Of a stretch of DNA of 64,000 bases, positions 27,046 through 32,459 are shown one piece after another (the first letter of the stretch is position 1; each line of letters begins with the position of its first letter). The DNA lies in the IMG/VR virus record IMGVR_UViG_3300027541_000009, positions 124,001 to 188,000 of that record; one strand, written 5' to 3'. The notes beneath the pieces were generated by a model, which had not been told where the DNA came from, ran no database searches, and saw only the letters and a program-made list of their open reading frames with translations. Both the position numbers and the translations under genes were made by a program.

Positions 27046-28125
27046 ATGACTGCTACAATTTCACGTCAACGACAATCGAATACTTGGGAACAATTCTGCA
27101 ACTGGGTCACATCAACCGATAATCGTCTTTATGTCGGTTGGTTCGGAGTCCTCATGATTCCTTGCCTGCTTGCTGCTACGACTTGTTTCATCATCGCATT
27201 CATCGGTGCTCCCCCAGTGGACATTGATGGTATCCGTGAACCCGTTGCTGGTTCACTCATGTACGGAAACAACATCATCTCTGGTGCTGTTATTCCTTCG
27301 TCCAACGCGATTGGACTGCACTTTTATCCCATCTGGGAAGCTGCTTCGCTTGATGAGTGGCTTTACAACGGTGGTCCTTTCCAACTTGTAGTGTTCCACT
27401 TCCTTATCGGTATCTACGCTTACATGGGTCGTGAATGGGAACTTTCATACCGTCTTGGTATGCGTCCTTGGATCTGTGTTGCTTACTCTGCACCTGTGGC
27501 TGCTGCTTCTGCTGTGTTCCTGGTGTATCCTTTCGGTCAAGGTTCTTTCTCTGATGCGATGCCTCTGGGTATCTCTGGTACGTTCAACTATATGCTTGTG
27601 TTCCAGGCAGAGCACAACATCCTGATGCACCCCTTCCACATGCTTGGTGTGGCTGGTGTCTTTGGAGGTTCTCTGTTCAGTGCTATGCACGGTTCTCTGG
27701 TTACTTCCTCACTGGTTCGTGAAACCACTGAGAACGAGTCACAGAACTATGGTTACAAGTTTGGTCAAGAAGAAGAGACCTATAACATCGTTGCTGCTCA
27801 CGGTTATTTCGGACGCCTTATTTTCCAATATGCTTCCTTTAATAACTCACGTTCGCTGCACTTCTTCCTTGCTGCATGGCCTGTAGTTGGTATCTGGTTC
27901 ACTGCTCTTGGTGTTAGCACCATGGCATTCAACCTCAACGGTTTCAACTTTAACCAGTCCATCATTGATTCACAGGGTCGTGTCCTCAACACTTGGGCAG
28001 ATGTTCTGAACCGTGCTGGACTCGGGCTCGAGGTGATGCACGAAAGGAATGCACACAATTTCCCTCTGGATCTTGCTGCTGCTAGCAACACTCCTGTTGC
28101 CCTTACTGCACCCGCAATCGGTTGA
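27046..28125 (+). CDS. psbA: Photosystem II D1 protein, intronless
   Basis: Unmistakable D1 sequence, with E130, H332, E333, H337 and A344. Confidence 0.99.
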
Positions 28126-28151
28126 GTTTTATAAAAACTGAATAAGAATGA

Positions 28152-28177
28152 AGAGACCTTTACAGGTCTCTTTTTTT
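28152..28177 (+). terminator. Intrinsic terminator after psbA
   Basis: AGAGACCT-TTAC-AGGTCTCT plus T run. Confidence 0.85.
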
Positions 28178-28222
28178 ATGGTATTATTCATAAATAGTTC
28201 CATACCAAACTTCCATACCATA

Positions 28223-28585
28223 ATGAAAACTTGTAGTAGATGTGGAGAAACAAAAGAACTTGATAGTTTCTCTAAAAGAAGTAGTAGACCTTCTGGGGTT
28301 CAATCAAAGTGTAAGGATTGTGAACGGGAAGTTCGTAGGCAATATTATAAGACTCACGAATATGCTAGACGCAGATTTAAACTTACAGAAGACCAATATA
28401 ATGACCTAATGAAGAATGAGAACTGCCAAATATGTGATGTGGAACTAACCAAGAAGTGTATAGACCACTGCCACTCTACAAATAAGGTTCGTGGTGTTCT
28501 CTGTAACAACTGCAACACTGCATTAGGTCTTGTAGGAGACAACATCAGCACTCTTCAAAAGATGATAGAATACCTAAATAACTAA
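28223..28585 (+). CDS. Endonuclease VII-family free-standing homing endonuclease (F-CphI-like)
   Basis: CSRC...CKDC zinc finger; CQIC...IDHCHSTNKVRGVLCNNCNTALG His-Me motif; late promoter TAAATA at 28191-28196; position directly after psbA. Confidence 0.8.
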   Translation: MKTCSRCGETKELDSFSKRSSRPSGVQSKCKDCEREVRRQYYKTHEYARRRFKLTEDQYNDLMKNENCQICDVELTKKCIDHCHSTNKVRGVLCNNCNTALGLVGDNISTLQKMIEYLNN

Positions 28586-28600
28586 AAAGTATTCATAAAA

Positions 28601-29335
28601 ATGGACGCACAAGAACTTCGCAATCTTCAAGAAGCATATATGGAAGTTGTTGAAAATCAGCAACTGGATGAAATCTCTGATAGAAAAGTCAAAGGAATGT
28701 TAAGAAAGAGAGATGCACAAGATGTAGATAGTGGTGGTATAAGTGGTGCTTGGATGGCAAGACGCCGCGCTCATCAGGCAGCAGCAAGAAGAAATGTAAG
28801 AACAGGTTCAAATGTTCGTGTCGATTCTGATTTAGCAAAAGAAGAAGTAGATGTTTACGATCTAATTCTTTCACACTTACTTGATGAAGGATATGCTGAT
28901 ACTCAACAAGCAGCAGAAGCAATTATGGTGAATATGAGTGAAGAGTGGAGAGACAATATTATAGAAAGAGAGGATAGTCCTTATGAGAAAGCATCTGATG
29001 CTGCATTAGATAAAAGATATGGATATGGTAGAGCATCTGGTGATAAGCGTTCTTTCGGTAGAGCAGCAAATCGTTCATCTGCTGCCGCTGCCCTTCGTGC
29101 TATTAGAAGAGGTGAAAGAAGTGGTAGTGGAACTTCAAGAGAAGCAGGTGCTGATGCAGTTCATCAGGGTTGGGCAAGAACTGCTAAAACAAGTACAGAC
29201 CAAACACCAGAAAAGAAACAAAGAAGAGCAAAACTTGCTAATACATCATATTCAAATCTTCCCGATGATGAAAAGGAAAAGGATAGAGTATCTTTTGATG
29301 CTGTAAGAGCAACTTATAATAGAAACAAAAGATAA
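28601..29335 (+). CDS. Hypothetical late protein with T4-like cyanophage repeat motifs
   Basis: MDAQELRNLQEAY and DLILSHLLDEGYADT..AAEAIMVNMSEEW segments; late promoter at 28575-28580. Confidence 0.7.
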   Translation: MDAQELRNLQEAYMEVVENQQLDEISDRKVKGMLRKRDAQDVDSGGISGAWMARRRAHQAAARRNVRTGSNVRVDSDLAKEEVDVYDLILSHLLDEGYADTQQAAEAIMVNMSEEWRDNIIEREDSPYEKASDAALDKRYGYGRASGDKRSFGRAANRSSAAAALRAIRRGERSGSGTSREAGADAVHQGWARTAKTSTDQTPEKKQRRAKLANTSYSNLPDDEKEKDRVSFDAVRATYNRNKR

Positions 29336-29367
29336 TAAAAAAGGAGGGATAAAACCCTCCTTTAACT

Positions 29368-29571
29368 TTATTTGGAACTTACAAAATCATTAATGATTTC
29401 TGCTTGTTCTAGAACTTGATTAAGTGTTGGAAACTCTGGATAATCCATTGCTACTTTTTTGTTCTCATCTTCATTCCAACGAACAGCAGTATCATATTCC
29501 ATGCTAAACTGGTCATTAAGCATATTATATGCTTGCTTAAAGATTTCAAATCGAAGTTCATAAGGTGTCAT
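29368..29571 (-). CDS. Hypothetical 67-aa protein with its own sigma70-like promoter
   Basis: MTPYELRFEIFKQA...; AGGAG RBS; minus-strand TTGACT (29641-29636) and TATAGT (29619-29614). Confidence 0.65.
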   Translation of the reverse strand: MTPYELRFEIFKQAYNMLNDQFSMEYDTAVRWNEDENKKVAMDYPEFPTLNQVLEQAEIINDFVSSK

Positions 29572-29671
29572 AGATATTCTCCTAATGTGTGTGATGTGTG
29601 TTTCCACTAAGAAACTATATCATAAATTATCAAAAAGTCAAGTAATAATAAAAACCTATCCTCAGTTTTCT

Positions 29672-29713
29672 GAAGCAACTCCTGTTGCTCTCACTGCACC
29701 TTCAATTGGTTGA
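29672..29713 (+). pseudogene. psbA: Stranded duplicate of the psbA 3' end ([13 protein letters not shown])
   Basis: Matches the D1 C-terminal extension ([11 protein letters not shown]) of the intact gene; followed by a shared AACTGAATAA and its own terminator. Confidence 0.85.
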
Positions 29714-29738
29714 TAACAACTGAATAACTGATATAATT

Positions 29739-29764
29739 AGAGGGTGTAACAACCCTCTTTTTTT
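29739..29764 (+). terminator. Intrinsic terminator after the psbA remnant
   Basis: AGAGGGT-GTAACA-ACCCTCT plus T run. Confidence 0.8.
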
Positions 29765-29887
29765 ATGTCTCATAATAATCAACATCATCCTATGGAACCC
29801 TGGATCATCTGGGCAGGTGTAGGTATGATGGTATTTACAGTTCTTGTATTTGTCTTATTCACTCTCGGTCAGATGTATTGGGGATAA
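29765..29887 (+). CDS. 40-aa membrane peptide (not in ORF track)
   Basis: MSHNNQHHPMEPWIIWAGVGMMVFTVLVFVLFTLGQMYWG. Confidence 0.5.
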   Translation: MSHNNQHHPMEPWIIWAGVGMMVFTVLVFVLFTLGQMYWG

Positions 29888-29900
29888 GCACAAACACTCA

Positions 29901-29934
29901 TTGACTACTTTGTTAAGGAATGTTAAGATAAATA
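29901..29934 (+). promoter_or_regulatory. psbD promoter: TTGACT-17-TAAGAT overlapping late TAAATA
   Basis: TTGACT 29901-29906, TAAGAT 29924-29929, TAAATA 29929-29934. Confidence 0.7.
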
Positions 29935-29955
29935 TGAGAAATAACTAAGGAGGTT

Positions 29956-31017
29956 ATGACTTCTTCTACACTTTCACAACCTATTCAACAACGAGGATGG
30001 TTTGATGTACTCGATGACTGGCTTAAAAGAGACCGTTTCGTTTTTGTTGGCTGGTCTGGACTTCTTCTTTTTCCCACTGCTTATCTTGCTCTTGGTGGTT
30101 GGATTACTGGGACAACTTTCGTCACGAGTTGGTATACTCACGGGCTTGCGAGTTCCTATCTTGAGGGTGCAAACTTTCTTACTGCAGCAGTTAGTACTCC
30201 AGCAGATTCTATGGGTCATTCTCTTCTTCTGCTCTGGGGTCCTGAGGCTCAAGGGGATATCGTCAGGTGGTTCCAACTTGGGGGACTATGGACTTTTGTG
30301 GCGCTCCACGGGGCCTTTAGTCTGATCGGATTTATGCTTCGCCAGTTTGAGATCTCACGACTGGTAGGCATCCGTCCTTACAACGCAATTGCATTCTCTG
30401 GTCCCATCGCAGTGTTTGTGAGCGTCTTCCTGATGTACCCTCTGGGTCAATCCAGTTGGTTCTTTGCACCTTCCTTTGGTGTTGCTGCTATCTTCAGGTT
30501 CCTTCTGTTCCTTCAGGGTTTTCACAACTGGACTCTTAACCCATTTCATATGATGGGTGTTGCTGGTATACTGGGTGGAGCACTGCTCTGTGCTATTCAC
30601 GGAGCAACTGTAGAAAACACACTATTTGAAGATAGTGATCAAGCAAATACATTCAAGGCATTCGAACCAACACAAGAGGAAGAAACCTATTCAATGGTTA
30701 CTGCTAACCGTTTCTGGTCGCAAATCTTTGGAATTGCTTTTAGTAACAAGCGTTGGTTACATTTCTTTATGCTCTTTGTTCCCGTCATGGGTCTCTGGAC
30801 ATCTTCTATCGGGATTATCGGTCTTGCTCTCAATCTTCGTGCTTACGACTTTGTTAGTCAGGAGATTGAAGCAGCCGTCAATCCGGAATACGAAACTTTC
30901 TACACGAAGAATATACTTCTTAACGAAGGGCTTCGTGCTTGGATGGCTCCCGTAGACCAACCACATGAAAATTTTGTTTTTCCAGAGGAAGTTTTGCCTC
31001 GGGGCAACGCACTTTGA
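29956..31017 (+). CDS. psbD: Photosystem II D2 protein
   Basis: Unmistakable D2 sequence ending EVLPRGNAL; AGGAGG RBS. Confidence 0.99.
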
Positions 31018-31021
31018 TTTT

Positions 31022-31048
31022 AAAGACCTCATTGTTGGGGTCTTTTTT
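31022..31048 (+). terminator. Intrinsic terminator after psbD
   Basis: AAAGACCTC/GGGGTCTTT stem plus T run. Confidence 0.75.
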
Positions 31049-31110
31049 ATTTACATAAGACCCAAAGTATGATAAAATATAAATAATAATAGATATTCAA
31101 AGTTAGGATA

Positions 31111-31680
31111 ATGCCCTTAAATAATAAATCAAAACCTTGTGGTGCTTTGATTGGTAAAAAATTTGGAAAACTTACTGTCCTGAAAGAAGAAGTAGTCTTT
31201 AAGAGTGGGAAGAATAGAGTTTATTCAACTTGTAAATGTGAATGTGGTGGAGAAAAAACTTGCGAGAGATATGGTCTTATGAATGGTTCAACTACTAGTT
31301 GTGGGTGTGTTAGGAGAGAAACTACTATTGCTTTTAATAAAACTAAAAAGAAACCAGAAGGTGAATTAAAAAAAGACGATAGAAGATATAGTATGTTTCA
31401 TAATGCTCAACATAGGGCAAAAAGAAAGGGTATTCCATTTAGTATAACTATAGATGATATTATTATTCCAGAAACTTGTCCTTTACTTGGAATACCTCTT
31501 GTATCTACTAATGATAAAAGAGATCCAAGAAATCCTAGTTTAGATCAAAAGGTTCCTGGTAAAGGATATACCCCCGATAATATTTGGGTTATATCTTCAA
31601 GAGCGAATGCCCTAAAATGGGACGCATCCCTACAAGAATTAGAACTCCTAGTAGAAAACCTCAAATGCTTCTCATCTTAG
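31111..31680 (+). CDS. HNH-like free-standing (putative homing) endonuclease
   Basis: KKFGKLTV..CKCECG..NGSTTSCGC N-domain; CPLLG..PSLDQKVPGKGYTPDNIWVISSRANALK His-Me-like core; late promoter at 31080-31085. Confidence 0.7.
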   Translation: MPLNNKSKPCGALIGKKFGKLTVLKEEVVFKSGKNRVYSTCKCECGGEKTCERYGLMNGSTTSCGCVRRETTIAFNKTKKKPEGELKKDDRRYSMFHNAQHRAKRKGIPFSITIDDIIIPETCPLLGIPLVSTNDKRDPRNPSLDQKVPGKGYTPDNIWVISSRANALKWDASLQELELLVENLKCFSS

Positions 31681-31863
31681 TTCTCTTCCAACTTTTTGGA
31701 ATCCTAATGTTTATATTATCTGTTATGCAGGACTTATGATAACTTCTACAACACCATACAAACTCGCAGAAATTATTCGTGATACATGGCCTGGACTTTA
31801 CAGACCACCAGTAAAGACTTATAATAAATCTTCTATAAATATTCCACAAAATTGCAGAAAAAA

Positions 31864-32100
31864 ATGAAGTTCACAGTTTATTCAAAAGATGGTTGCCCAT
31901 ATTGCACAAAAGTTCAACAGGTGCTAGAGTTGGCACAACTGCAACATGTAGTCTACAAATTGAATAGTGATTTTAGTAGAGAAGAATTTTATTCAGAATT
32001 CGGAGAGGGATCTACCTTTCCTCAAGTGATTGTAAATGACCAACACATTGGTGGATGCACCGATACTGTTCAATATCTAAAGGAGCAAAATCTAGTTTAA
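31864..32100 (+). CDS. nrdC: Glutaredoxin
   Basis: YSKDGCPYC, TFPQV, HIGGC. Confidence 0.9.
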   Translation: MKFTVYSKDGCPYCTKVQQVLELAQLQHVVYKLNSDFSREEFYSEFGEGSTFPQVIVNDQHIGGCTDTVQYLKEQNLV

Positions 32101-32459
32101 TGGAAAACACCATTCACGAAGTTTGTAACGATGTAGAAAAAGCAATTGATTATGCTTTCAATGGTCAATTTGTTTTGAGTTTTTATGATTATCTAAAAGT
32201 TCGTGGAACTAAAAAAGTAGAGGTTGAACAATTTATTGAAAGTAATACAGCACACGAGCTGAGTAATCTTGTAATGGATTTGGATGATTATCTTGAGGGT
32301 GGATCAGATGAGATTCATAAACAACTTCGTGAAGGATATGGACATATTCCAAAACCACAAGCAAGAAAAATAAGAAATTACCTTTACGGTATTCTTGAAG
32401 ATGCCTGGAGATATAATCATGACAAAAGACCAGGAAGGAGAAAGAAGCAAACTAAATAA
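32100..32459 (+). CDS. Hypothetical protein
   Basis: TAATG overlap with glutaredoxin; operon position. Confidence 0.7.
   Translation: MENTIHEVCNDVEKAIDYAFNGQFVLSFYDYLKVRGTKKVEVEQFIESNTAHELSNLVMDLDDYLEGGSDEIHKQLREGYGHIPKPQARKIRNYLYGILEDAWRYNHDKRPGRRKKQTK

Follow-up and report, generated by a model that had tools for sequence, protein, structure and literature searches.

Homing endonucleases are usually seen as neutral passengers that exploit conserved sites and leave the host protein unchanged. Several of them, including I-TevI in the thymidylate synthase gene and I-AniI, read conserved codon positions of essential genes; in those cases, it is the inserted intron or intein that shields the host gene. 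In cyanophages, F-CphI of phage S-PM2 is reported to target psbA (Zeng, Bonocora and Shub 2009, cited in PMC3037559 and PMC2984593). The locus considered here lies in a 64,000-nt stretch, referred to as the window (positions 124,001 to 188,000 of IMG/VR virus record IMGVR_UViG_3300027541_000009), which belongs to a T4-like Synechococcus cyanophage from riverine metagenomes. Coordinates are positions in the whole window, and L-numbers denote the loci compared. The window harbors psbD, encoding the D2 protein of photosystem II (PSII), and, downstream of it, the open reading frame (ORF) ORF189. An initial annotation proposed that a psbD-targeting homing endonuclease drove amino acid change in D2 and pointed to a cyanophage precedent acting on psbA, which is correct and corresponds to F-CphI (Zeng et al. 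2009, as cited in PMC3037559). On the basis of comparative sequence analysis, ORF189 is read here as a free-standing (intronless) homing endonuclease of a PacI-like beta-beta-alpha-metal family that acts on psbD and whose carrier would be immune via replacements in D2; a probability of roughly 0.7 is assigned to this reading.

The psbD gene of the window is intact and encodes a D2 of 353 residues, in which variant positions are given in the 352-residue numbering. Its product has a full-length Photo_RC domain and retains E312 and K317, as expected for a PsbD protein with a predicted function in PSII, and it shares 94-98% amino acid identity with the products of 80 IMG/VR phage psbD genes. Translation places the codons att gaa gca gcc gtc aat ccg gaa tac exactly at 30865-30891 and bears out the four replacements named in the initial annotation, R304E, E307V, D308N, and F311Y. 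The canonical segment, RAAEDPEFETFYTK, is encoded by 60 of the 60 distinct nuclease-less canonical phage haplotypes despite heavy synonymous variation and is also found in most of the cellular D2s recovered. To call the segment normally invariant was nevertheless too strong, as some cellular D2s harbor E307V/K/Q/A together with F311Y (e.g., a Leptolyngbya protein carrying LRAAVDPEY). The adjoining ETFY(T/S/L)K is kept in every allele compared.

A sequencing error, which the initial annotation had named as a possible undoing of its proposal, is refuted, and the probability of any assembly or sequencing artifact is negligible. The window allele together with ORF189 is identical in at least five independent assemblies from different samples, a 2167-nt DNA contig at a depth of 272 spans 29916-32082 with zero differences, and contigs from RNA libraries across the region likewise have zero differences to the window form. 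An analogous arrangement exists in the cultured phage S-SKS1, whose psbD carries EDGSY and is followed 60 nt downstream by a nuclease homolog. No point in favor of an artifact was found. The RNA contigs with zero differences include those from metatranscriptome runs X3, X16, and X19 from the same river, which cover the 3′ end of psbD and ORF189 within the compared region 29700-32300; they are compatible with in situ transcription of both genes, and DNA carry-over is possible.

The association between the nuclease gene and D2 replacements was assessed in phage psbD haplotypes, dereplicated and drawn from IMG/VR, JGI/ENA metagenomes, and GenBank by three routes: by psbD similarity, by the nuclease, and by a pattern for a residue other than Phe at position 311. 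Nuclease genes of the ORF189 type have a loop of about 9-11 residues (long-loop), which is missing from a smaller group (short-loop). Among canonical psbD haplotypes, 60 have no gene at this site, four have a short-loop gene, and none has a long-loop or a GIY-YIG/NUMOD3 gene, while the respective counts among variant haplotypes are nine without a gene, zero short-loop, 25 long-loop, and one GIY-YIG/NUMOD3. Replacements in D2 residues 304-316 are thus present in 25/25 haplotypes with a long-loop gene versus 0/60 nuclease-less canonical ones, and the carrier allele differs at the putative target, which at the sequence level is the pattern associated with homing immunity. An earlier two-by-two table from IMG/VR alone (15/4/4/60) gave a Fisher p of 1e-9.

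Each sampling route yields its own picture. By psbD similarity (80 IMG/VR loci), 70 loci could be judged to be without the gene, and all of these are canonical, except for A305T in two and I/V at 303, amid heavy synonymous variation; a homolog is present at nine loci, four of which have segment replacements. By the nuclease, all relatives of at least 61% identity with recovered upstream DNA sit 64-103 nt after psbD, and each psbD beside such a relative has a replacement in codons 304-316. By the non-Phe-311 pattern, the gene is present at 20 of 25 IMG/VR loci, and the gene-less matches in general metagenomes are cellular D2s, other phage types, or alleles with an empty site or a remnant. The exact window patch occurs only beside an ORF189-type gene, in four distinct nucleotide haplotypes (the flank of one record is too short), and a fifth haplotype with the close form EIEASVNPEY is also gene-linked. 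The co-occurrence anticipated in the initial annotation therefore holds for the exact allele, which is never found without the gene. The opposite outcome, with the variant common in phages lacking the endonuclease, is not seen for this allele; nine haplotypes of the wider variant class are without a gene.

Several gene-less variants can be described individually. L138, L239, L261, and L229 have psbD alleles with EDPSY or EDPEY, and the first three have a canonical empty site. L229 has kept a cassette-type terminator with no nuclease gene. These four loci are candidates for gene loss or for the spread of free-standing resistant alleles. In a metagenome contig (L237), codon 310 of a partial psbD at the contig end, within this very segment, is an in-frame TAG (IRAEENP*CETFYTK), which may represent a broken psbD or a misrepaired site.

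The distribution of the changes along psbD is strongly localized. Bases unseen in 71 nuclease-less alleles cluster in the patch covering D2 codons 304-316 in every allele linked to a long-loop gene; those of the window lie at 30868-69, 30876, 30878-80, and 30890. All four private amino acid changes of the window fall within 14 of the 353 codons, versus 1 of 35 for nuclease-less alleles, and the share inside the segment is 1/1 and 5/7 in the gene-linked L068 and L039, respectively. The proportion of nonsynonymous differences (pN) in the segment is 0.196 for linked alleles versus 0.014 for nuclease-less ones. The ratio of pN to its synonymous counterpart (pN/pS) is 0.262 versus 0.019 in the segment and 0.097 versus 0.058 in the rest of the gene. 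Eight codons account for at least 14 independent replacements (F311Y/W; P309A/S/G; E307V/S/Y; D308N; R304E; T316S/L; E310S), with E310S reached by two unrelated Ser codons, AGT and TCA, and at least 12 different protein-level D2 alleles accompany the nuclease gene. E312 and K317 are unchanged in all alleles. Both residues are located in the Cl-1/broad channel, while mutation of E307, D308, and E310 is reported to leave the Fourier-transform infrared (FTIR) spectra unaffected (bioRxiv 10.1101/2021.01.29.428861). Because the changed residues tolerate mutation, with E312 and K317 left intact, PSII chemistry is unlikely to be altered to a large extent.

The replacements could instead represent adaptive or neutral, lineage-specific variation of PSII at the lumenal, PsbO-contacting surface, linked to the nuclease through shared ancestry. 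Such an origin would agree with the occurrence of F311Y with E307 variants in cellular D2 lineages and in gene-less phage types (L120, L264, L230, and L242), and the gene-linked alleles are phylogenetically non-independent. It is nonetheless very unlikely. The linked alleles reside on psbD backgrounds up to 13% apart in amino acid sequence, and at synonymous sites their 5′ parts are interspersed with those of nuclease-less alleles. The replacements do not converge on one residue (Y or W; S, V or Y; A, S or G), and there are zero canonical alleles beside a long-loop gene. Furthermore, the same window patch occurs with three nuclease types, with genes only 61% identical, and with an L124-type gene, which implies that the patch was transferred together with a nuclease gene. 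Nuclease phylogeny and target allele show no simple match, one patch being found with different nuclease lineages.

The comparison with psbA provides an internal control. In the window, psbA is likewise followed by an endonuclease gene, ORF145, which is of the F-CphI type. Among 14 psbA alleles with an endonuclease VII (EndoVII)-type gene and 55-59 alleles without one, no cluster of private amino acid or nucleotide changes accompanies the gene. The psbD cluster is therefore not a general effect of a neighboring endonuclease, and the proposal that any adjacent endonuclease yields replacements is ruled out.

Features of the psbA-psbD region of the window
Feature	Position	Strand	Evidence or remark
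psbA	27046-28125		intron-less; upstream of psbD
ORF145, F-CphI-type endonuclease VII gene	28148-28585		after psbA; PF02945 at 8e-18
psbD (photosystem II D2, 353 aa), intact	29956..31017	+	ORF; Pfam PF00124 at 2.3e-72
Putative target and immunity patch, D2 codons 304-316	30868..30905	+	cluster of private bases
Mobile cassette (terminator, promoter, nuclease gene)	31018..31664	+	junction alignment with L002, L075, L079, L056, L028, and L034
Intrinsic-terminator-like hairpin and T-run after psbD	31022..31045	+	cassette-borne; same element in L088
TATAAATA, T4 late-promoter consensus	31078..31085	+	25 nt upstream of the ORF189 start codon
AGGA, likely ribosome-binding site	31105-31108	+	ahead of ORF189
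ORF189, putative free-standing endonuclease	31111..31680	+	PHROG profiles, AF2 model, fold comparison
Conserved 24-aa membrane-type (hydrophobic) ORF (MLLILVLFQLFGILMFILSVMQDL)	31665..31739	+	right-hand insertion border

ORF189 is part of a mobile cassette that takes the place of approximately 40 nt (AAATAAATAA plus a terminator) present in otherwise collinear nuclease-less relatives, in which the psbD stop codon is followed by AAATAAATAA, the terminator, and a 24-codon membrane-type ORF. Homology with the nuclease-less loci picks up exactly at 31665, within the last 16 nt of ORF189. The endonuclease ORF is hence outside any intron or intein and is present or absent at one precise site, as in described homing systems. 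The cassette-less junction is also present in lower-depth contigs, such that both genotypes coexist in the same riverine samples. In a megablast search of the cassette against GenBank phages, the psbD part alone was matched.

The cassette carries its own regulatory elements. The initial annotation placed the ORF immediately after psbD with its own TAAATA promoter. The start codon in fact lies 93 nt past the psbD stop, behind the cassette's own terminator. The promoter-like motif does exist at a conserved position, although in full it reads TATAAATA and is not enriched in the 64-kb window (4 matches versus 6 expected). The motif is kept upstream of the homologous genes in L088, L131, L133, L143, L010, L032, L033, L055, L070, and S-SKS1, and it is this conserved position across divergent cassettes, rather than window statistics, on which the promoter assignment is based. 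Late transcription of ORF189 is suggested by the match to the T4 consensus. A terminator related to that of the cassette remains in L229.

ORF189 could also be a mobile endonuclease whose target lies elsewhere (e.g., at the psbD-stop/intergenic junction that the insertion splits); the D2 patch would then be a by-product, arising by hitch-hiking of a divergent psbD 3′ end or through error-prone repair close to repeated breaks, and not the basis of immunity. This possibility would accommodate the short-loop relatives adjoining canonical psbD, as well as the duplicated psbD 3′ end that flanks some cassettes and is suggestive of events at the extreme end of psbD. The synonymous divergence of linked alleles also covers the whole 3′ end, extending beyond the patch, and L088, L039, L070, and L091 have a small number of further private changes at residues 338-342. 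Hitch-hiking, however, does not predict that replacements in eight codons recur as different residues or codons in separate lineages, nor would random mutagenic repair without selection spare E312 and K317 and hit tolerant residues alone. In addition, the empty-site variants L138, L239, and L261 keep the patch despite their canonical junction. A target outside the patch is therefore considered unlikely.

Linked and unlinked alleles share fewer third positions over the stretch between the patch and the stop codon, where their identity declines from approximately 0.55 to 0.39-0.48. This differentiation of the 3′ end fits linkage or co-conversion to a modest degree.

The predicted protein resembles known nucleases at the level of profiles and fold. 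ORF189 matches phrog_3322 (endonuclease; 1.8e-31), phrog_1035 (endonuclease VII; 4e-18), and HNH phrogs, and it has no match in Pfam (E ≤ 0.1, including HNH PF01844 and Endonuclease_7 PF02945), NCBIfam, or PDB sequences. An AF2 model with a predicted local distance difference test (pLDDT) score of 84 has two domains. Residues ~5-62 are predicted to form a Tudor/SH3-like barrel with an invariant Cys4 site (C43, C45, C64, and C66), and residues ~82-171 are predicted to adopt a PacI-like beta-beta-alpha-metal domain (SLDQ...KGY153...N157...RAN166..K169.D171). In structure comparisons, the C-terminal domain matches PacI with a Z score of 7.1 over 90 residues, which is moderate only, Hpy99I with 5.0, and the Gme (Geobacter) HNH nickase with 4.7, while Foldseek returns PacI with a probability of 0.97 for the model. 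The beta-hairpin and helix metal finger of the His-Me/HNH superfamily is thus recognizable at moderate strength. The term HNH-like used in the initial annotation is apt with regard to fold and PHROG profile and inapt with regard to Pfam HNH and the catalytic His, which is replaced by Q; ORF189 is a PacI-like nuclease and not a canonical HNH enzyme.

PacI is classified as a His-Me finger enzyme (group 20) in which a loop Tyr replaces the His, while groups lacking both His and Tyr are considered inactive (PMC5714182). In ORF189, Y153 of the KGY motif sits in the loop between two strands and is invariant in 61 homologs, and N157, N166, K169, and D171 are invariant or nearly so. Y153 may be equivalent to the PacI Tyr. 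The orthologs have ratios of nonsynonymous to synonymous substitution (dN/dS) of 0.08-0.37, indicative of purifying selection. The family comprises 423 protein clusters in metagenomes, none of which is named.

Loss of the catalytic His raises the question of whether ORF189 is an inactive DNA-binding remnant or regulator that marks an old insertion, in which case its association with the D2 alleles would be historical. The Q/R/K at the general-base position, the missing Pfam, NCBIfam, and PDB sequence matches, and the presumed inactivity of His-Me groups devoid of both His and Tyr (PMC5714182) would be in keeping with such a role. It is made highly improbable by the near-invariance of Y153, N157, N166, K169, and D171 in the 61 homologs, by purifying selection, and by the activity of PacI, the best structural match, with the same His-to-loop-Tyr arrangement. 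Presence and absence at one site, module shuffling, and the 423 clusters further constitute the pattern of an active mobile gene.

The N-terminal barrel/Cys4 and C-terminal nuclease modules are shuffled, by alignment, among the genes of L041, L121, L127, L131, and L135; the L041 nuclease has its N-terminus in common with L127 and its C-terminus with L121. In L055 (2056-2559) and L033 (~130 nt after the nuclease gene), duplicated psbD 3′ ends flank a short-loop cassette; the L055 nuclease protein itself ends with the D2 C-terminus. In L231 (10518-10922, minus strand), a gene with a GIY-YIG-like N-terminus and a NUMOD3 motif (4.5e-8), seemingly split into two ORFs, follows a psbD with an EDASY allele behind TATAAATA. 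The 3′ flank of psbD is an apparent hotspot for homing endonucleases of several types.

The neighborhood of the cassette has additional features. The 24-codon ORF MLLILVLFQLFGILMFILSVMQDL follows psbD in most relatives; in the window, it shares its first 16 nt, read in another frame, with the end of ORF189. Just upstream of psbD, a 40-aa membrane-type ORF (29765-29887) has a full-length match to phrog_7358 (5e-17), a family of unknown function. Further upstream, the last 37 nt of psbA (28089-28125) recur at 29677-29713 as a degenerate direct repeat, such that a 1.55-kb block (ORF145, ORF244, and an antisense ORF) is enclosed by two psbA 3′ ends. The layout of this region (28126-29713) resembles an insertion footprint. 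Among the psbA loci L147-L226, psbA of L223 is interrupted, possibly by an intron.

A mechanism can be proposed for action on psbD. Transcription of ORF189 would probably occur late in infection, with TATAAATA as its own promoter. When a carrier and a gene-less related phage infect the same cell, the enzyme would cut the psbD of the latter within or next to D2 codons ~304-316, approximately 110-150 bp upstream of the cassette position, and recombinational repair from the carrier genome would transfer the psbD 3′ end together with the cassette to the genome that was cut. In the carrier, psbD itself would have to resist cutting. Because nuclease-less alleles vary freely at third positions, the enzyme apparently reads the protein-constrained first and second codon positions, and immunity could then be gained through amino acid replacement alone. 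Replacements would build up at the tolerant lumenal residues R304, E307, D308, P309, E310, F311, and T316, with E312 and K317 fixed. Cleavage, its exact site, homing, and the direction of causality are all inferred from comparative data.

The proposal that a psbD-directed homing endonuclease drove the change in D2 is thus supported by the association between long-loop genes and replaced alleles, and a number of observations weigh against it. The three samples were ascertained differently, and their statistics are not phylogeny-corrected. Three of the nine variant haplotypes without a gene have an empty site and one has a remnant. The four homologous genes beside canonical psbD all lack the loop of ~9-11 residues; they are inserted 29-40 nt after the stop codon and are basal in the tree, and at least this short-loop subgroup has another target or is inactive. 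The general-base His is replaced by Q in the window and by R or K in relatives (SLD[QRK]), the PacI match is moderate only, and the Tyr equivalence is putative. The gene-linked 3′ ends are diverse among themselves, leaving a modest co-conversion signal. F311Y with E307 changes is natural in some cellular D2s, so resistant states could pre-exist rather than be driven, and "driven" could also stand for survival of the gene only next to alleles that are already resistant.

The shuffled N-terminal modules, the different loop types (Q, K, R), and the GIY-YIG/NUMOD3 gene at the same spot in one relative prompt a broader and more doubtful suggestion, namely, that psbD and diversifying PacI-like homing endonucleases are in an ongoing arms race in which successive specificities select resistant D2 alleles in carriers and non-carriers alike. 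An arms race of this kind would have generated a series of D2 alleles, with at least 12 protein variants, on the lumenal side of PSII that faces PsbO. Exchange of photosystem genes between phages and hosts has been reported (Zeidner 2005 and Sullivan 2006, as cited in PMC3037559). Combined with such exchange, a selfish nuclease would be a possible source of D2 amino acid diversity, hosts included.

The comparative data indicate that the cost of carrying or resisting the nuclease is amino acid change in D2, which ranks among the most conserved of known proteins. Since the changes are limited to residues that PSII tolerates, beside E312 and K317 of the Cl-1/proton-exit region, they amount to a natural "mutational scan" of this surface. 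The His-less, PacI-like proteins are candidates for a new and abundant family of site-specific nucleases (423 clusters), and the cultured S-SKS1 on Synechococcus WH7803, which carries a homolog, offers a tractable system. The searchable literature yielded no report of an endonuclease directed at psbD. The elements that would be new, judging from the comparisons made here, are psbD as the target gene, this nuclease family as homing endonucleases, and immunity in the form of amino acid change in a core photosystem protein.

The restriction enzyme PacI is a dimer, contains two Cys4 zinc sites, and recognizes a palindromic 8-bp site. PacI (PDB 3ldy/3m7k) and ORF189 share the lack of a catalytic His and the presence of a Tyr in the loop between two strands. 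The two proteins are 16% identical with no sequence-level match, the Tyr equivalence is putative, and ORF189 differs from PacI in its extra N-terminal barrel with a Cys4 module and in its behavior as a mobile gene. In common with I-TevI and I-AniI, ORF189 would have its target in the most protein-constrained part of a gene, with synonymous variation apparently tolerated. Unlike in those cases, the psbD coding sequence itself would have had to change.

F-CphI, in the accounts that cite it, is also encoded by a free-standing gene directly downstream of a phage PSII gene and targets element-less relatives. Those accounts describe an endonuclease VII-type enzyme with a psbA target, whose carrier is protected by a group I intron that splits the site. 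ORF189, in contrast, would target psbD, is PacI-like with a Tudor-like N-terminal domain, and would be protected by amino acid replacement. The T4 enzymes SegF, SegG, and MobE, known for intronless homing and marker exclusion, are likewise encoded by ORFs between conserved genes and reportedly cut at a distance in the neighboring gene of a naive phage with co-conversion of the flanks, the carrier being resistant by sequence differences (Belle 2002 and Liu 2003, as cited in PMC3037559). These are GIY-YIG or canonical HNH enzymes, while ORF189 is PacI-like. A further distinction from the T4 systems is that the gene at psbD is found with at least 12 alleles of a highly conserved protein that differ at the protein level. 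In SegF, SegG, and MobE, the differences conferring resistance are reportedly described at the nucleotide level.

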